From sequence record NC_027364.1: DNA of 64,000 bases; one strand, written 5' to 3'. The translations under genes and the position numbers were made by a program. Shown here one piece after another: positions 7,714 through 26,390 of this stretch. Position 1 is the first letter of the stretch, and every line of letters begins with the position of its first letter. Below the pieces are notes generated by a model. The model saw nothing but the letters and a program-made list of their open reading frames with translations. It searched no databases and was not told the DNA's origin.

Positions 7714-8502
7714 TTAAATGTTAGTAGTATAGTACTTGATTTCGTTTTGAATTGCAAGTTCTATTTGTTTATTGAAAAGAATTCCAAACTCTTTGATTGA
7801 TTCACAATCGAATTCAATAGAAAAAGTATACTCTGGTATACGTACATTGTCAATACCCAAATACTCTTTTATGTAAATTTTAATGAGTTCACATAGTGCA
7901 GTACTAAGACATTGAATTTCAAAATGTTTTGCACCTTTGTCAAAATACTTGAATGCATCAATATCACCTACAATAAAACTATTCTTTAATGTAGTGAATA
8001 GGTTCTCAGGAAACACGGTAATAGGTGACATTGATTTAAGAATGTATGTATCTTTGGCATTCTTAATGTACTCAATGAAGCAGTAGTTAACGTCAGGCTC
8101 GATTGAACGATCCGCGTTATGATACCAGTGTTTAAACTCACTGTATTCAGCAAACTTATGCTGGCGTAATGCGTTACAATCTTCACACAGTGCAGTCATG
8201 TTCTCTTTATCATTACCGCCCTGAAGACAGTCAAGTACATTATGGTCTAACGTCATGCGTACAAGGCGTTTCCCTTTAAGTACATAAGGTCTGAATTTAT
8301 AACGTTCTTTAGTACTGTGCTTATGTAAAGTGAATACCACATTGGATTCACCACAACAATCACATTTAAAGCCATCACGTGACATTACATGAATGAGTTT
8401 TCGAGTATTTGGACCAAACTCTGATTTGGTAATGTTACCTACAATTTCTGATGGTTTGTAGTATTTTGAATTCCGGCGAATCAATTCATCTATAGTGCTC
8501 AT
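7714..8502 (-). CDS. HNH endonuclease family protein
   Basis: RDGFKCDCCG...TLDH...GG...N...LCEDCN zinc-binding HNH pattern. Confidence 0.8.
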   Translation of the reverse strand: MSTIDELIRRNSKYYKPSEIVGNITKSEFGPNTRKLIHVMSRDGFKCDCCGESNVVFTLHKHSTKERYKFRPYVLKGKRLVRMTLDHNVLDCLQGGNDKENMTALCEDCNALRQHKFAEYSEFKHWYHNADRSIEPDVNYCFIEYIKNAKDTYILKSMSPITVFPENLFTTLKNSFIVGDIDAFKYFDKGAKHFEIQCLSTALCELIKIYIKEYLGIDNVRIPEYTFSIEFDCESIKEFGILFNKQIELAIQNEIKYYTTNI

Positions 8503-8734: not shown

Positions 8735-8940
8735 TTAGTTTGACCCACAATAAGTTTCTCTTTAGTATTACTATTGTAACACCACATTTGTTCTTTACTA
8801 ACTGTAATCCAAATATCTTTGTTTACTTGTTCGTATGTACTATCACGTAATGCAATGCATTGATTCATGGAATTCATTGGGGTTATTTGTACACCGGAAT
8901 TAACAGAAAAAGCTATTACTAAAAAGATTACTGAATTCAT
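8731..8940 (-). CDS. small exported protein with two Cys
   Basis: hydrophobic N-terminus; M.QC...WC. Confidence 0.65.
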   Translation of the reverse strand: MNSVIFLVIAFSVNSGVQITPMNSMNQCIALRDSTYEQVNKDIWITVSKEQMWCYNSNTKEKLIVGQTK

Positions 8941-9004
8941 TGGATATTCCTTAATGGTTAATCATCCATCTCTTCGAGATGTCTGTTCGCTTCTAATACT
9001 ACGT

Positions 9005-9033
9005 ATTCTACGCGAATGATTAATAACTGTCAA
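9005..9033 (-). promoter_or_regulatory. promoter TTGACA-N17-TAGAAT
   Basis: motifs read directly. Confidence 0.75.
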
Positions 9034-9044
9034 GGACTTTTAAT

Positions 9045-9522
9045 ATTGACGGGATTTGAGGAAGGGATTTTTCTTCCCCCCCACAAGGAGGGAAATTTGA
9101 CGCTGATGGTATCAGAGCTATTGCATTGAAGATTACTCATAACGAGTGCGAAAGCGGGTCATCCTGTTTCTCTCTACTTCAGTTTCATATGACGGTCTAC
9201 ACTTTTAAACATAGTGTATCTTCATTAAGTATCTATGCAATCAAATACTTAATGTGAGTACTCAAATTCTGGACGCAACTTTCCTGTACAAAATTTGATA
9301 ACTCTCCCTTAGATAATTCGTAAGGTGTTATCCTTATATGTCTATCAAGGAACCACCAGCTATCCTAACGTGGTTCTTTATACAGCCGCATTGCCGTGAG
9401 GGGTTCAAACTATGCCCACATCTAACGGGTTTCTTTTGCTGTTCGCACTGTCGGACTGCTCAACTGCCCTCTACGTTTTCGAGTGGATCAGGTACATGAA
9501 TATCATGCCAACAGAATTGTAC
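9045..9522 (-). ncRNA. candidate large structured ncRNA (about 480 nt), family unknown
   Basis: ORF-free on the minus strand, GC-richer, own extended -10 at 9529-9537, many stems including a long-range pseudoknot, G.U pairs fit the minus strand. Confidence 0.5.
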
Positions 9523-9528
9523 AAGATA

Positions 9529-9537
9529 ATTATATCA
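9529..9537 (-). promoter_or_regulatory. extended -10 promoter TGaTATAAT
   Basis: directly downstream of the sigma-gene terminator. Confidence 0.55.
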
Positions 9538-9558
9538 CAAACTTTTACTTCATCCCAT

Positions 9559-9589
9559 AAAAAAAGGTTGGCTTATGCCAACCTTTTTT
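9559..9589. terminator. bidirectional intrinsic terminator
   Basis: AAGGTTGGC-TTAT-GCCAACCTT flanked by A and T runs. Confidence 0.8.
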
Positions 9590-9591
9590 CT

Positions 9592-10557
9592 TTAGAAATC
9601 TTCGTATTCGTACCCTTTTGCAAGTACTAGCTTCTTAAGCTTTTGCATAGCTTCACTGTACTTTCGGTGTATTGATGAACGGGATTTAACATATTTTCCA
9701 TTATCATCAACAAAACCATTATCAGCAATCTCACGAAGCGTTTCAGGTTCATATTCACCTAGACCATGAACACGCTGGATAATCTCACGTTCTTTAGTAC
9801 TCAATTCGTTGGTCAGTTCATTGATAGCATAACGCAAAGGTGCACGGATACTATCAACATTGAGGTTAAAATCAGAAGCAGGTGAATGAATAATGTCACC
9901 TAATGTACCATCTGTAACACCGTCTAATGGTGCATCCAGCGAAGTGTATTCGCTTTGAAATAACAAACAATTATTAACATGCTGAATCTCAATCCCAGTA
10001 CCCTCTGAGATTATTTCAGGAGTTGGGCGAACACCATGTTTACGCATATATTCCTGACAGAATCTTTTTACTTTGATCTTATGAACACTCATATAACGTG
10101 GGAAGTGTACCATATAGTTAGCGTCAGAACTTTCGTTATAGACTGTCATGTAAATACTAGAAGAAGCATAGGTAATGAACTTAACATTCTTATTAAGATC
10201 AAAGGTTTTTAGTGCTCTCATGAACCCCTCAACACCATATGAAATCTTATCTTCAAATGGGATATAACAAGTACATTTACTTGCTACATCAATAATCAGT
10301 CCATAATTGTAACGAACTAACAGTTCAGTGTTTTTCTTTACATTGATACCAGCTTGAATATCACGAATTAGATCTTCATTGGAAACATTTGGTGGTCGCT
10401 TAAGTGTAATATTATATTTGAAACTGCTTTGTACTTTACCTTCATTTTCATCTTTATCTTCAACGAAATCTAAGGCTTCTAGTGTGTTGACTTCTTCATT
10501 AGCAAAACATTCATCCAGAACTTCTTCGGCAATTGTATTTAAATCAAGCTTTTTCAC
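9592..10557 (-). CDS. sigma70-family RNA polymerase sigma factor
   Basis: region 2 (N.GLI...EG..RA...FD...KF.TYA), region 3 (RPT.E...SLDAP), region 4 (LS.KERE.I...GL...TL.EIA). Confidence 0.9.
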   Translation of the reverse strand: MKKLDLNTIAEEVLDECFANEEVNTLEALDFVEDKDENEGKVQSSFKYNITLKRPPNVSNEDLIRDIQAGINVKKNTELLVRYNYGLIIDVASKCTCYIPFEDKISYGVEGFMRALKTFDLNKNVKFITYASSSIYMTVYNESSDANYMVHFPRYMSVHKIKVKRFCQEYMRKHGVRPTPEIISEGTGIEIQHVNNCLLFQSEYTSLDAPLDGVTDGTLGDIIHSPASDFNLNVDSIRAPLRYAINELTNELSTKEREIIQRVHGLGEYEPETLREIADNGFVDDNGKYVKSRSSIHRKYSEAMQKLKKLVLAKGYEYEDF

Positions 10558-21826: not shown

Positions 21827-21916
<90 letters not shown>

Positions 21917-21928
21917 AGAAGTAAGATA

Positions 21929-22101
<173 letters not shown>

Positions 22102-22144
22102 ATTGACCTCGTTAGATTAAAACCCCCAGTTTTCTTCTTGAACC

Positions 22145-22929
<785 letters not shown>

Positions 22930-22944
22930 TTATACCTCGCATTG

Positions 22945-23104
<160 letters not shown>

Positions 23105-23107
23105 GTA

Positions 23108-23233
<126 letters not shown>

Positions 23234-23242
23234 GTAGTATTT

Positions 23243-23602
23243 TCAGAAAAAAACCTTATTCAACACTTTAATTATCACAGAATTTAATTCATGTGGGAAC
23301 ACATTTTCATATACTGTGCGTTTCTGAAATTCATCTTCTTCATCAGCACTTAGCTGGAAGGTAATGTATTGAGCATTTATACTATTTATTATATCACGTA
23401 AAGTGTTATTTGTCCTTTTTATTTCTTCAAATGATTCAAAAACAATTACATCGTCATTTATAATAAATGATTCACCATATTCATTGAAAATGCGAATTCC
23501 AGGATTATCTTTACACCAGTTATTGGTATGGTCTGTTGTTAATTTTGAATTCAAAAATGATTTAAGAAACTCTTCATACTTTGAAATGTCTTTAACACTC
23601 AT
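23243..23602 (-). CDS. EExxFQxS-motif family protein (variant)
   Basis: ADEEDEFQKRTVYEN. Confidence 0.65.
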   Translation of the reverse strand: MSVKDISKYEEFLKSFLNSKLTTDHTNNWCKDNPGIRIFNEYGESFIINDDVIVFESFEEIKRTNNTLRDIINSINAQYITFQLSADEEDEFQKRTVYENVFPHELNSVIIKVLNKVFF

Positions 23603-23625
23603 ATCACCAACTTTAATTAAAAAAA

Positions 23626-23958
23626 TGGATGGTGACGCTTTTAAACGCCGCTGTTAATTCAGCTTTATAACCACCCGTTTTAACTTACCTTTCGGCTACC
23701 TTGACGTGGGGCGTACAGGCTACTAAAAGCAACTTCTGTAAACATATTTCCACGCCTTACCCTTTTAAATAAAAGTCCATCCGGTTTTCCAGTTTGGTGA
23801 AGGACTTTCACCTCTAGTTTCAACCTGCTAGTCAAGTAATAATTGCCTATCGTCCAATTATCAAACCCGTCTAGGTTAACATTCACCACTTCCTAGAGTA
23901 CCAGAGATCTTGTTCTGGTTAGCATCGACGTAACTTACACCATATACGTCTGATTGTG
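23626..23958 (-). ncRNA. candidate structured ncRNA (about 330 nt) with tRNA-like 3' domain
   Basis: promoter at 23965-23993, multiple stems, 3' GGGTGGT/ACCATCC-A helix then T run. Confidence 0.5.
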
Positions 23959-23964
23959 GAATTC

Positions 23965-24002
<38 letters not shown>

Positions 24003-24059
24003 ACAAATCTGGACGTTCATCTTTAAACATATTAATATCCTCAGTACTGAATTATTTAG

Positions 24060-24473
<414 letters not shown>

Positions 24474-24483
24474 CTTTTTTTTT

Positions 24484-24645
<162 letters not shown>

Positions 24646-24649
<4 letters not shown>

Positions 24650-24810
24650 GTTCGTACCATTATTTCAATAAAGAACCACGGATACGCTTCATGGTTTATA
24701 AGTTTATCGTATTCTGCTGGGTCTGACATGATTTCCCAATGATACTTTCTCCAGTTACCGAAACCTGCATATCTAAAATTAATGTCATTCATCCATTCTT
24801 CATGCGTCAT
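24646..24810 (-). CDS. MTHEEW microprotein (54 aa, not in ORF track)
   Basis: MTHEEWMNDINFRYAGFGNWRKYHW...PWFFIEIMVRT. Confidence 0.65.
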
Positions 24811-24814
24811 GGTT

Positions 24815-24916
<102 letters not shown>

Positions 24917-24920
24917 ATTT

Positions 24921-25036
<116 letters not shown>

Positions 25037-25614: not shown

Positions 25615-25797
25615 TTAGTTTTGATTATTTGACTTTCTAAATGCCAGTTCGCATATAAACCAGGGTTTTCTGGTATCCAAAACATATGACCTGAAAAGAT
25701 TTTCATCTCTTAATATATCATAATGTACCTGACGAATGCCATTCCCAAAGCAGTCATGTTCTTTATGCTGTTTGGACATCCATTCTTCGTGTGTCAT
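25615..25797 (-). CDS. MTHEEW microprotein (60 aa)
   Basis: start reassigned to MTHEEW, just after the upstream TAA. Confidence 0.65.
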   Translation of the reverse strand: MTHEEWMSKQHKEHDCFGNGIRQVHYDILRDENLFRSYVLDTRKPWFICELAFRKSNNQN

Positions 25798-25798
25798 T

Positions 25799-26014
25799 TT
25801 ATGTATCCAGTACAATTAAGTGCTGCATCTCTTCTTTTGTAAAGAAAGCACTGTCATGAACAATAGAACCAGTCTTATCAACTACATAGTACAGGTTTCC
25901 ATATTGTTGAACATCAATTCCGTCAATTTCAATTCGTGGAAAATTTTGGACAATACAGTCTGCACCGAAAACCTCACCAAAAAAGTTTCCTGCTGGATTG
26001 ATAATGACTTTCAT
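25799..26014 (-). CDS. hypothetical protein
   Basis: 71 aa, AGGTG SD. Confidence 0.65.
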   Translation of the reverse strand: MKVIINPAGNFFGEVFGADCIVQNFPRIEIDGIDVQQYGNLYYVVDKTGSIVHDSAFFTKEEMQHLIVLDT

Positions 26015-26138: not shown

Positions 26139-26315
26139 CTATTTTTTGTCTCTAATAGCAAGCTCGTAGATGAACCAGTGGTTGGAATCTTCGTCCAAAA
26201 CCAATGATTCGAACGTTTTTTTATCGTTCAAAACATCATAATGGCCTTGGCGTATACCAAATCCAAAATGATCATGTTTATATTTTAGTGACTCTATCCA
26301 TTCTTCATGTGTCAT
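26139..26315 (-). CDS. MTHEEW microprotein (58 aa)
   Basis: MTHEEWIESLKYKHDHFGFG...WFIYELAIRDKK. Confidence 0.65.
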   Translation of the reverse strand: MTHEEWIESLKYKHDHFGFGIRQGHYDVLNDKKTFESLVLDEDSNHWFIYELAIRDKK

Positions 26316-26316
26316 T

Positions 26317-26390
26317 TTATGTATCCAGTTCAATTAAGTGTTTCATTTATTCTTCTGTAAAGAAAGCATTGCAATGGACAATGGAAAAGG
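26317..26390 (-). pseudogene. remnant of the 3' end of the 25799..26014 gene
   Basis: SIVHCNAFFTEE*MKHLIELDT vs SIVHDSAFFTKEEMQHLIVLDT, with in-frame stop. Confidence 0.65.

Follow-up and report, generated by a model that had tools for sequence, protein, structure and literature searches.

Large RNAs that are rich in conserved tertiary structure are rare, and most of them proved to be ribozymes, ribonucleoprotein cores or self-assembling particles; dense invariant unpaired bases and pseudoknots are typical of all three. Among them, ROOL (RF03087) and GOLLD (RF01998) are several hundred nucleotides long, contain many pseudoknots and invariant junction bases, and are carried by phages or prophage-like elements as their own transcription unit, with no partner protein gene. 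An RNA of similar kind is described here from a window of 64,000 nucleotides of sequence record NC_027364.1, which matches Escherichia phage PBECO4 with 100% identity (Asteriusvirus, a 348-kb Rak2-like jumbo myovirus; the position in the PBECO4 record minus 186,000 gives the window position). Its predicted gene lies on the minus strand at 9046-9523. The likeness to ROOL and GOLLD is one of kind and no evidence of homology: none of five members compared matches RF03087 or RF01998 at E≤10, and the hosts of ROOL and GOLLD are Firmicutes/Lactobacillales, whereas the present family belongs to Enterobacterales and jumbo myoviruses. It also differs in having four to five regularly spaced and co-oriented copies per genome, a conserved promoter, a 3′ motif and a repeated short motif.

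Other described RNAs offer partial parallels. The phi29 pRNA is likewise a phage-encoded structured RNA with a covarying loop-to-strand pairing, and one pseudoknot of the present RNA (PK2) could in principle be intermolecular. However, the present RNA is about three times larger, is multi-copy and has no RF00044 match, and the loop of each paralogue matches its own partner strand; to our knowledge, T4-type packaging motors do not use RNA. The omega RNA of IscB (HEARO) shares with the present RNA a large, pseudoknotted, multi-copy, mobile and intergenic character, yet no nearby IscB/TnpB gene, model match or guide segment accompanies the family described here. The layout of the present locus is compatible with that of the ColE1 RNA II and T4 oriF/oriG systems, with a promoter that would direct transcription to a conserved site bordered by AT-rich DNA and with more than one such site in each genome. 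The R-loops of T4 arise within tens of nucleotides of the promoter, and we know of no origin RNA with a conserved pseudoknotted core. Finally, the related Pseudomonas jumbo phage PA5oct has four ORF-free transcribed regions of 236-619 nucleotides, ncRNA001-004 (ORF, open reading frame), two of which are very abundant in RNA-seq (PMC7318152).

A structured RNA gene on the minus strand

The RNA gene occupies a gap that is poor in ORFs (8941-9591), located between a sigma-70-family gene and a series of small ORFs. As first noticed in an initial annotation of the window made from the sequence alone, the gap is richer in GC than its surroundings (0.415-0.46 versus about 0.30-0.34 on either side). 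None of the records shows a gene inside it, and one marks a "repeat_region" there. Comparison with relatives shows that the predicted unit at 9046-9523 is an independent cassette for a structured non-coding RNA, composed of a promoter, a core of about 400 nucleotides, and a 3′ GC hairpin with its tail. A sensitive BLAST search of phage records showed that about 450 nucleotides of the gap are conserved, at roughly 70% identity, in jumbo phages of Cronobacter, Pectobacterium, Serratia, Erwinia, Yersinia, Salmonella, Klebsiella and Xanthomonas, with three to five matching places per genome. Further members were collected by pattern scans of viral, genome and metagenome collections and confirmed with an nhmmer profile, bringing the family to 136 full-length members in 79 clusters at 97% identity.

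The case for structure is comparative rather than thermodynamic, since the folding energy of the single sequence does not differ significantly from that of shuffles on either strand (z = -1.1 and -1.65). Structure work was performed on alignment A3, which holds 42 non-redundant copies. RNAalifold predicted 58 pairs, 39 of them with compensatory changes, and pseudoknots were added by a search for covarying column pairs. The resulting curated model contains 82 pairs in 19 helices, i.e., 14 nested helices and five pseudoknots, and covariation backs 13 of the 14 nested helices and all five pseudoknots. Standard pairing over the cells of the model reaches 96.8%, against 33-40% in slid controls; 62 of the 82 pairs are changed on both sides, against 17-26 in the controls; and the covariation score is 0.55, against 0.06-0.09. 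None of 500 shuffles reached the values observed for the model. Dozens of unpaired positions are invariant as well, including GAUAGA, AAGGGA, GACCGU, ACCCGC and UGAG. We infer that the RNA folds as a compact globular particle whose tertiary core is built from its many invariant nucleotides in junctions and loops.

Four of the stems put forward in the initial annotation (9350-9356/9370-9376, 9321-9325/9332-9336, 9224-9232/9245-9253 and 9198-9203/9213-9218) recur as the covariation-supported H5, H6, H7 and H8. Two others, 9295-9301/9342-9348 and 9127-9133/9218-9224, have no pair in the covariation model, and neither has the long-range pairing of eight base pairs between 9145-9152 and 9442-9449 that had been proposed as a pseudoknot; taken together, these three are only 52% paired over the 42 sequences, which does not exceed their slid controls. 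The arms of the long-range pairing overlap the covarying H2/H3 and H11/H12, and the 9127-9133/9218-9224 stem overlaps H10 and H8, while the 9295-9301/9342-9348 stem is clear of every helix in the model but does not pass the test of conservation. Pseudoknots are present, as had been supposed, but they are five other, covarying interactions and not the one first proposed.

The strand is given by G.U pairs, which had also been read as minus-strand wobble pairs in the single sequence. At four pairs of the model, G.U is present on the minus strand in 41, 35, 29 and 27 of the 42 sequences; such pairs would be A-C mismatches on the opposite strand, so the RNA lies on the minus strand. Protein coding of the gene is excluded by the sequences of 79 representatives, all of which have at least four stops in every frame of the RNA strand. 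The longest ORF has a median of 47 amino acids in this set, and the insertions and deletions of the family are mostly not multiples of three.

Every examined member, chromosomal ones included, has an A/T-rich tract, a weak −35-like ATGAAAC and an extended −10 of the form TGnTATAAT or TATACT. The extended −10 had been recognised in the initial annotation and is conserved across the family; its position there (9529-9537) was one base off, the true one being 9530-9538. In the window copy, the A/T-rich tract precedes the −35-like box, which sits on the minus strand just downstream of the sigma-gene terminator and was not called as a promoter in a scan for consensus promoters. The layout is of the sigma-70 extended −10 type and, being shared by phage and chromosomal island copies, points to the host sigma-70 RNA polymerase as the enzyme that would transcribe the RNA early in infection. 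The 5′ limit of the gene is set about seven nucleotides past the −10, both ends being predicted from conservation. One subfamily (L020, L023, L031, L038, L045, L070, L092, L089 and L028) has a strong hairpin and a U-run right after the promoter and ahead of the conserved leader motif, which could be a 5′ stabiliser or an attenuator.

The family is new. Rfam 15 was searched at the gathering threshold over the whole window and at E≤10 for the locus and four distant members, and returned no match to them; what came back was limited to tRNAs at other places, look-alikes of terminators and noise. Literature searches yielded no description of the family, and the broader surveys consulted make no mention of it. 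These results bear out the earlier view of an undescribed large phage RNA on the minus strand with its own promoter, for which covariation and 136 relatives now provide strong support, and the view that it is not a tmRNA, an RNase P RNA or a group I intron. ARAGORN detected no tRNA or tmRNA in 8900-9650 and, like Rfam, gives no sign of the tRNA-like ends and tag frame of a tmRNA. For RNase P RNA there is no match at E≤10, and an ACAG..ACCCGC look-alike of CR-V lies in a loop that pairs as PK3. A group I intron is dismissed by the intergenic position, the gene's own promoter and the lack of an RF00028 match. Two further resemblances were rejected. The CAGAUGAG-stem-CGAA stretch is no more than a look-alike of the hammerhead core (CUGANGA and GAAA with three stems): it has an A at the U4 position and matches no Rfam model, its UGA may instead pair with the 3′ UCA, and no stem I was found. 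The other is an 11-nucleotide tetraloop-receptor look-alike. All three look-alikes, of CR-V, the hammerhead and the receptor, were inspected by eye and dismissed, and none holds up against the covariation model.

The elements of the cassette are listed in the table. In PK5, which joins the leader to the loop of H2, three CUG/CAG pairs are invariant, and the two variable pairs read AU 18/UA 10/CG 6/UG 6 and UA 21/AU 11/GC 3; an alternative pairing of the leader CUG with ACAG of the H11 loop was rejected, covariation placing the partner in the H2 loop. The columns or register of PK1 shift between subfamilies. The module of about 30 nucleotides carried in the variable insert is found in other members in the same insert, at the apex of H12 or at both sites, and peripheral docking elements of large RNAs switch position in this way. 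A helix of three base pairs between UCA (9098-9100) and UGA (9460-9462) may close the core; both triplets are invariant, and hence show no covariation.

Table. Elements of the RNA gene cassette in the window, listed 5′ to 3′ along the RNA strand, and copies of the gene in PBECO4
Feature	Position	Strand	Remarks
Whole RNA gene	9046-9523	-	limits of family conservation; predicted start to end of conserved 3′ tail
Weak −35-like box	9553-9559	-	ATGGGAT here, consensus ATGAAAC; its T, G and A do not vary among 16 aligned members
Extended −10 (TGnTATAAT)	9530-9538	-	TG 9538-9537, TATAAT 9535-9530; kept in paralogues and in distant and chromosomal members
5′ leader motif ACAAYYCUGNN	9508-9522	-	conserved; 9511-9515 (CUGUU) pairs in PK5
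PK5	9511-9515 with H2 loop 9448-9452	-	confirmed on a separate alignment
Hairpin H1, loop GAAAAYGUA	9464-9491	-	double-sided changes in 7/8 pairs
Hairpin H2	9445-9459	-	loop is the 3′ strand of PK5; pair 49/62: UA 19, AU 13, CG 10
H3/H4 domain	9382-9442	-	A-rich internal loops and a variable hairpin; 3/5 pairs of H3 covary
PK4	9389-9391 with 9338-9340	-	pair 148/213: GC 33, AU 9
Hairpin H5	9350-9376	-	6/6 pairs covary
PK1	H5 loop with strand just 5′ of invariant UAAGGGAG, near 9312-9313	-	covaries; register varies by subfamily
Hairpin H6, invariant GAUAGA ahead	9321-9336	-	2/4 pairs covary, others invariant
Variable insert	9257-9303	-	closed by a covarying base of two base pairs
Position-flexible module of about 30 nucleotides, UUUGUACA...GCGUCC...AAUUUG (UACAAUAUAGAUCCGUCC type)	9263-9293	-	inside the variable insert
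Hairpin H7	9223-9254	-	10/12 pairs covary
PK2	H7 apical loop 9236-9241 with 9120-9125	-	6/6 pairs covary, 99.6% paired
Hairpin H8	9197-9219	-	3/4 pairs covary
3′ domain	9127-9193	-	holds PK3, H10, H11 and H12
PK3	GUUGC-type strand 9189-9193 with H11 loop 9158-9162	-	3/5 pairs covary
H10	9177-9181 with 9127-9131	-	4/5 pairs covary
H11	9170-9174 with 9150-9154	-	4/5 pairs covary
H12	9144-9147 with 9135-9138	-	4/4 pairs covary
Core end and first short repeat (CCAUCAGCGUCAA)	9097-9109	-	co-varies as identical with the second copy
C-run/G-run hairpin	9074-9094	-	in 50/50 examined members; no U tract after the hairpin
Second short repeat (CAAAUCCCGUCAA)	9046-9058	-	end of the conserved 3′ tail
PBECO4 copies	L003:38049-38506; L004:43712-44130; window 9092-9495; L008:6009-6393		

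The C-run/G-run hairpin after the core, which had been proposed as a 3′ GC hairpin from the single sequence, is a constant element of the family, as is the nearly invariant 3′ tail, which ends in AAAUCYCGUCAR in 50 of 50 examined members. In about half of these 50 members, a terminator-like hairpin followed by U7 is inserted between the core and the 3′ motif. After the tail repeat, about 40 nucleotides of DNA are AT-rich (GC 0.23 versus 0.34 for the PBECO4 genome). The 3′ motif is found nowhere else in PBECO4 and occurs only with the RNA genes. It was rejected as a promoter, the −10-like box past the second repeat being missing from island copies. A short motif, AUC(N)CGUC, is present three to four times per RNA, in the 9263-9293 module, at the core end and in the tail, and this recurrence suggests a site of a common binding partner or of cleavage.

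Copies in jumbo phage genomes and chromosomal islands

PBECO4 has four copies of the gene, at 38.0, 93.7, 195.1 (the window copy) and 305.0 kb, all on one strand and 69-86% identical to the window copy; the window itself holds no further copy, the other three lying outside it. Two stretches of PBECO4 of about 2 kb each, at 151.7-153.7 kb (L006:1711-3705) and 343.9-346.1 kb (L008:44865-47144), have no annotated gene, and neither contains a copy of the RNA. In 12 of 12 complete jumbo genomes, PBECO4 among them, all four to five copies lie on one strand. Spacing was measured in genomes whose copies were fetched by exact patterns, and the copy counts agree with the number of places matched by BLAST. 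The intervals are mostly 60-86 kb in five-copy genomes (63, 81, 84, 77 and 52 kb in Serratia phage BF), and several four-copy genomes have one gap of about double size, 142-163 kb. Under random placement, the chance of a smallest gap that large is <0.001 to 0.07 per genome, values that count as roughly one observation because the positions are syntenic and orthologous across genomes. Copies 1, 2 and 4 of PBECO4 are co-directional with their downstream genes. Copy 3 holds the genome-wide orientation and is antisense to its neighbours, as is its orthologue in phage 7t3. Neither GC skew nor AT skew changes sign at the four PBECO4 loci.

Full-length members are also found in chromosomes of E. coli, Citrobacter, Enterobacter, Silvania, Buttiauxella and Serratia, and in metagenome-assembled genomes. 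In Enterobacterales they reside as single copies in integrative islands with a recurrent order: an integrase of the tyrosine or large serine type, the RNA, an ORF-poor stretch, a divergent cI-like repressor on which the RNA converges, a Cro-like protein, an unnamed 286-amino-acid protein, an LprI-like protein, a resolvase and variable cargo. The cargo of one island includes kwaB of the Kiwa defence system and an adjacent ORF (L166:13083-14625). The E. coli island adjoins ffs and carries a DUF4326/DUF488/dual-OB cluster, a defence-type cargo (L143:9995-11726). A third chromosomal context contains ParB/RepB-like genes. The commonest island neighbour is the unnamed protein, of 257-286 amino acids (L144:5039-5899, L143:8257-9030, L166:10159-11019 and relatives), which has no match in Pfam, PHROGs or NCBIfam and no homologue in PBECO4. 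When the island neighbours were compared with the whole of PBECO4 by tblastn, only a DUF4326 match and weak matches of spurious ORFs inside the RNA gene were obtained.

In a maximum-likelihood tree, island copies occupy at least three places among the phage copies, so there have been several transfers of the cassette between phages and islands. The copy of the E. coli island has a Serratia/Yersinia phage paralogue as its sister (support 100/97). The four PBECO4 paralogues form one cluster (support 98/98); within Asteriusvirus, paralogues were either homogenised or recently duplicated.

Surroundings of the window copy

Upstream, the sigma-70-family gene (9592-10557, minus strand) ends in its own terminator hairpin, 3′ of the gene. 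A sigma gene adjoins only one of the four PBECO4 copies, and its adjacency to the window copy is coincidental. On the other flank of the gap, the small minus-strand ORFs are followed by an HNH-like ORF (7714-8502, minus strand, 262 amino acids), 0.5 kb downstream of the RNA, which a related record describes as similar to an HNH endonuclease and which is possibly a free-standing homing endonuclease. Directly past the RNA cassette, at 9033-9005 on the minus strand, TTGACA-17-TAGAAT comes close to the sigma-70 promoter consensus and is presumably the promoter of the small ORFs from 8940 downward. A cluster of six tRNA genes, one of which reaches the Rfam threshold, lies on the minus strand at 21838-25010, some 12 kb from the RNA copy. 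Just past this cluster lies a direct repeat of 91 nucleotides, 87% identical, at 25778-25868 and 26296-26386, the two units being 518 nucleotides apart.

Possible roles of the RNA

The best reading of these observations, to which we give a probability of about 0.4, is that of a trans-acting, compactly folded RNA particle of the ROOL/GOLLD kind, kept in several copies for dosage. The host RNA polymerase would make the RNA early in infection, the RNA would fold into a compact globular particle around its tertiary core, and its action would be in trans and as RNA, the mode also supposed for ROOL and GOLLD. Candidate activities are those of a self-assembling particle, of a scaffold or decoy for a conserved host or phage component, or of a ribozyme, while several gene copies would supply dosage. 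The clustering of the PBECO4 paralogues counts for dosage, as multi-copy RNA genes kept for dosage often cluster in this way. The terminator-like hairpins right after the core in about half of the members fit a discrete trans-acting RNA.

Several points weigh against this proposal. To name a specific activity, whether cage, decoy or ribozyme, would be a guess. A purely trans-acting role does not predict the regular spacing and common orientation of the copies, and no neighbouring protein is common to the phage and island contexts. A canonical terminator is missing from the window copy. The 3′ motif is conserved even past the terminator-like inserts, and the core-end and tail repeats co-vary as identical, not complementary, sequences (TT 32/CC 9; GG 28/AA 10); these two features hint at a function at the level of DNA or in protein binding. 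The ncRNA001-004 regions of PA5oct show no sequence or profile similarity to the present family and are not homologous to it, so the RNA-seq obtained there provides no transcript evidence for it.

The regular spacing and co-orientation of the copies make origin function, which the initial annotation had named as a contrary outcome, the main rival, somewhat less probable than the reading above. Each cassette would then serve a T4-like replisome as a replication origin: an R-loop or primer would arise from the transcript, or from its 3′ part, where the 3′ motif and the AT-rich stretch lie, broadly in the manner of ColE1 RNA II and T4 oriF/oriG. The role of the folded body would be to place the hybrid or to bring in replication proteins, and islands would carry the cassette in order to be replicated by an infecting jumbo phage. 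Co-oriented copies in 12 genomes at gaps of 60-86 kb, or about 140-160 kb where a copy is missing, speak for such a role, although the spacing statistics derive from orthologous positions and amount to roughly one observation; copy 3, which keeps its orientation against its neighbours, points the same way, whereas the GC and AT skews keep their sign at all four loci. The 3′ motif, associated only with the RNA genes, the two iteron-like repeats that co-vary as identical and the AT-rich stretch of 40 nucleotides would suit an origin, yet terminator-like hairpins stand between the core and the motif in about half of the members. The PBECO4 gene set includes T4-type proteins for replication and recombination as well as RNase H, and island and phage copies have been exchanged at least three times, but no recognisable initiator gene lies beside the island cassette. 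Moreover, five pseudoknots and dozens of invariant unpaired bases are far more elaborate than any known origin RNA.

It is improbable that the RNA belongs to a mobile element, as a guide or scaffold comparable to IscB/TnpB omega RNA or bridge RNA, or as part of a selfish cassette in which short direct repeats and hairpins are sites of recombination or cleavage. The family is multi-copy, intergenic and repeatedly exchanged between phages and islands, and its promoter and 3′ motif always accompany it; hairpins lie between identical short repeats, island copies adjoin tyrosine or serine recombinases, and the window copy has the HNH-like ORF nearby. However, there is no adjacent IscB, TnpB or IS110-type gene and no protein shared by the phage and island contexts, HEARO and the other element RNA models of Rfam give no match, copy positions are syntenic across genera rather than scattered, and none of the segments looked hypervariable in the manner of a guide, those that vary all covarying internally. 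Still less credible is a cis-regulatory leader of the downstream genes (a riboswitch, processive antiterminator or attenuator). Co-directional downstream genes at copies 1, 2 and 4, a window copy that lacks a canonical terminator and the terminator-like hairpins after the core in many members would fit a leader, but copy 3 and its 7t3 orthologue lie antisense to the genes around them, and in islands the RNA and cI are convergent, so the RNA is not a leader of the genes downstream; these genes differ in every context, and those of the window are served by the separate strong promoter at 9033-9005. Least credible of all is binding of RNA polymerase or of the phage sigma factor by a 6S/Ms1-like RNA, a role suggested in the initial annotation from the position directly after a sigma-70-family gene. 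The likeness to 6S RNA and Ms1, that of a non-coding RNA with one copy beside a sigma gene, does not extend to size or architecture, and the position beside a sigma gene is not a conserved one: the other three PBECO4 copies lie away from sigma genes, and so do all island copies, which adjoin an integrase and cI instead. The multi-branched covariation fold with five pseudoknots is no bulged hairpin and rules out the single long irregular hairpin with a central bubble of the 6S type, and RF00013 has no match at the gathering threshold or at E≤10.

If the cassettes were instead a new type of replication origin or another genome-spacing element, a possibility about as probable as the origin role discussed above, a large pseudoknotted RNA would mark four to five evenly spaced and co-oriented sites on a 350-kb phage chromosome and, transcribed in place by the host polymerase, would prime or organise replication. 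Small integrative islands with defence genes would then have captured the cassette repeatedly so as to be copied by the infecting jumbo phage, or to interfere with it. The family is well suited to experiment, offering cultivable E. coli phages, one of which grows on K-12, a deep covarying alignment, regular spacing in a single orientation and island counterparts that travel with anti-phage defence genes. Its role would address either the purpose of ornate phage RNAs or the way in which replication starts on phage genomes of 350 kb.

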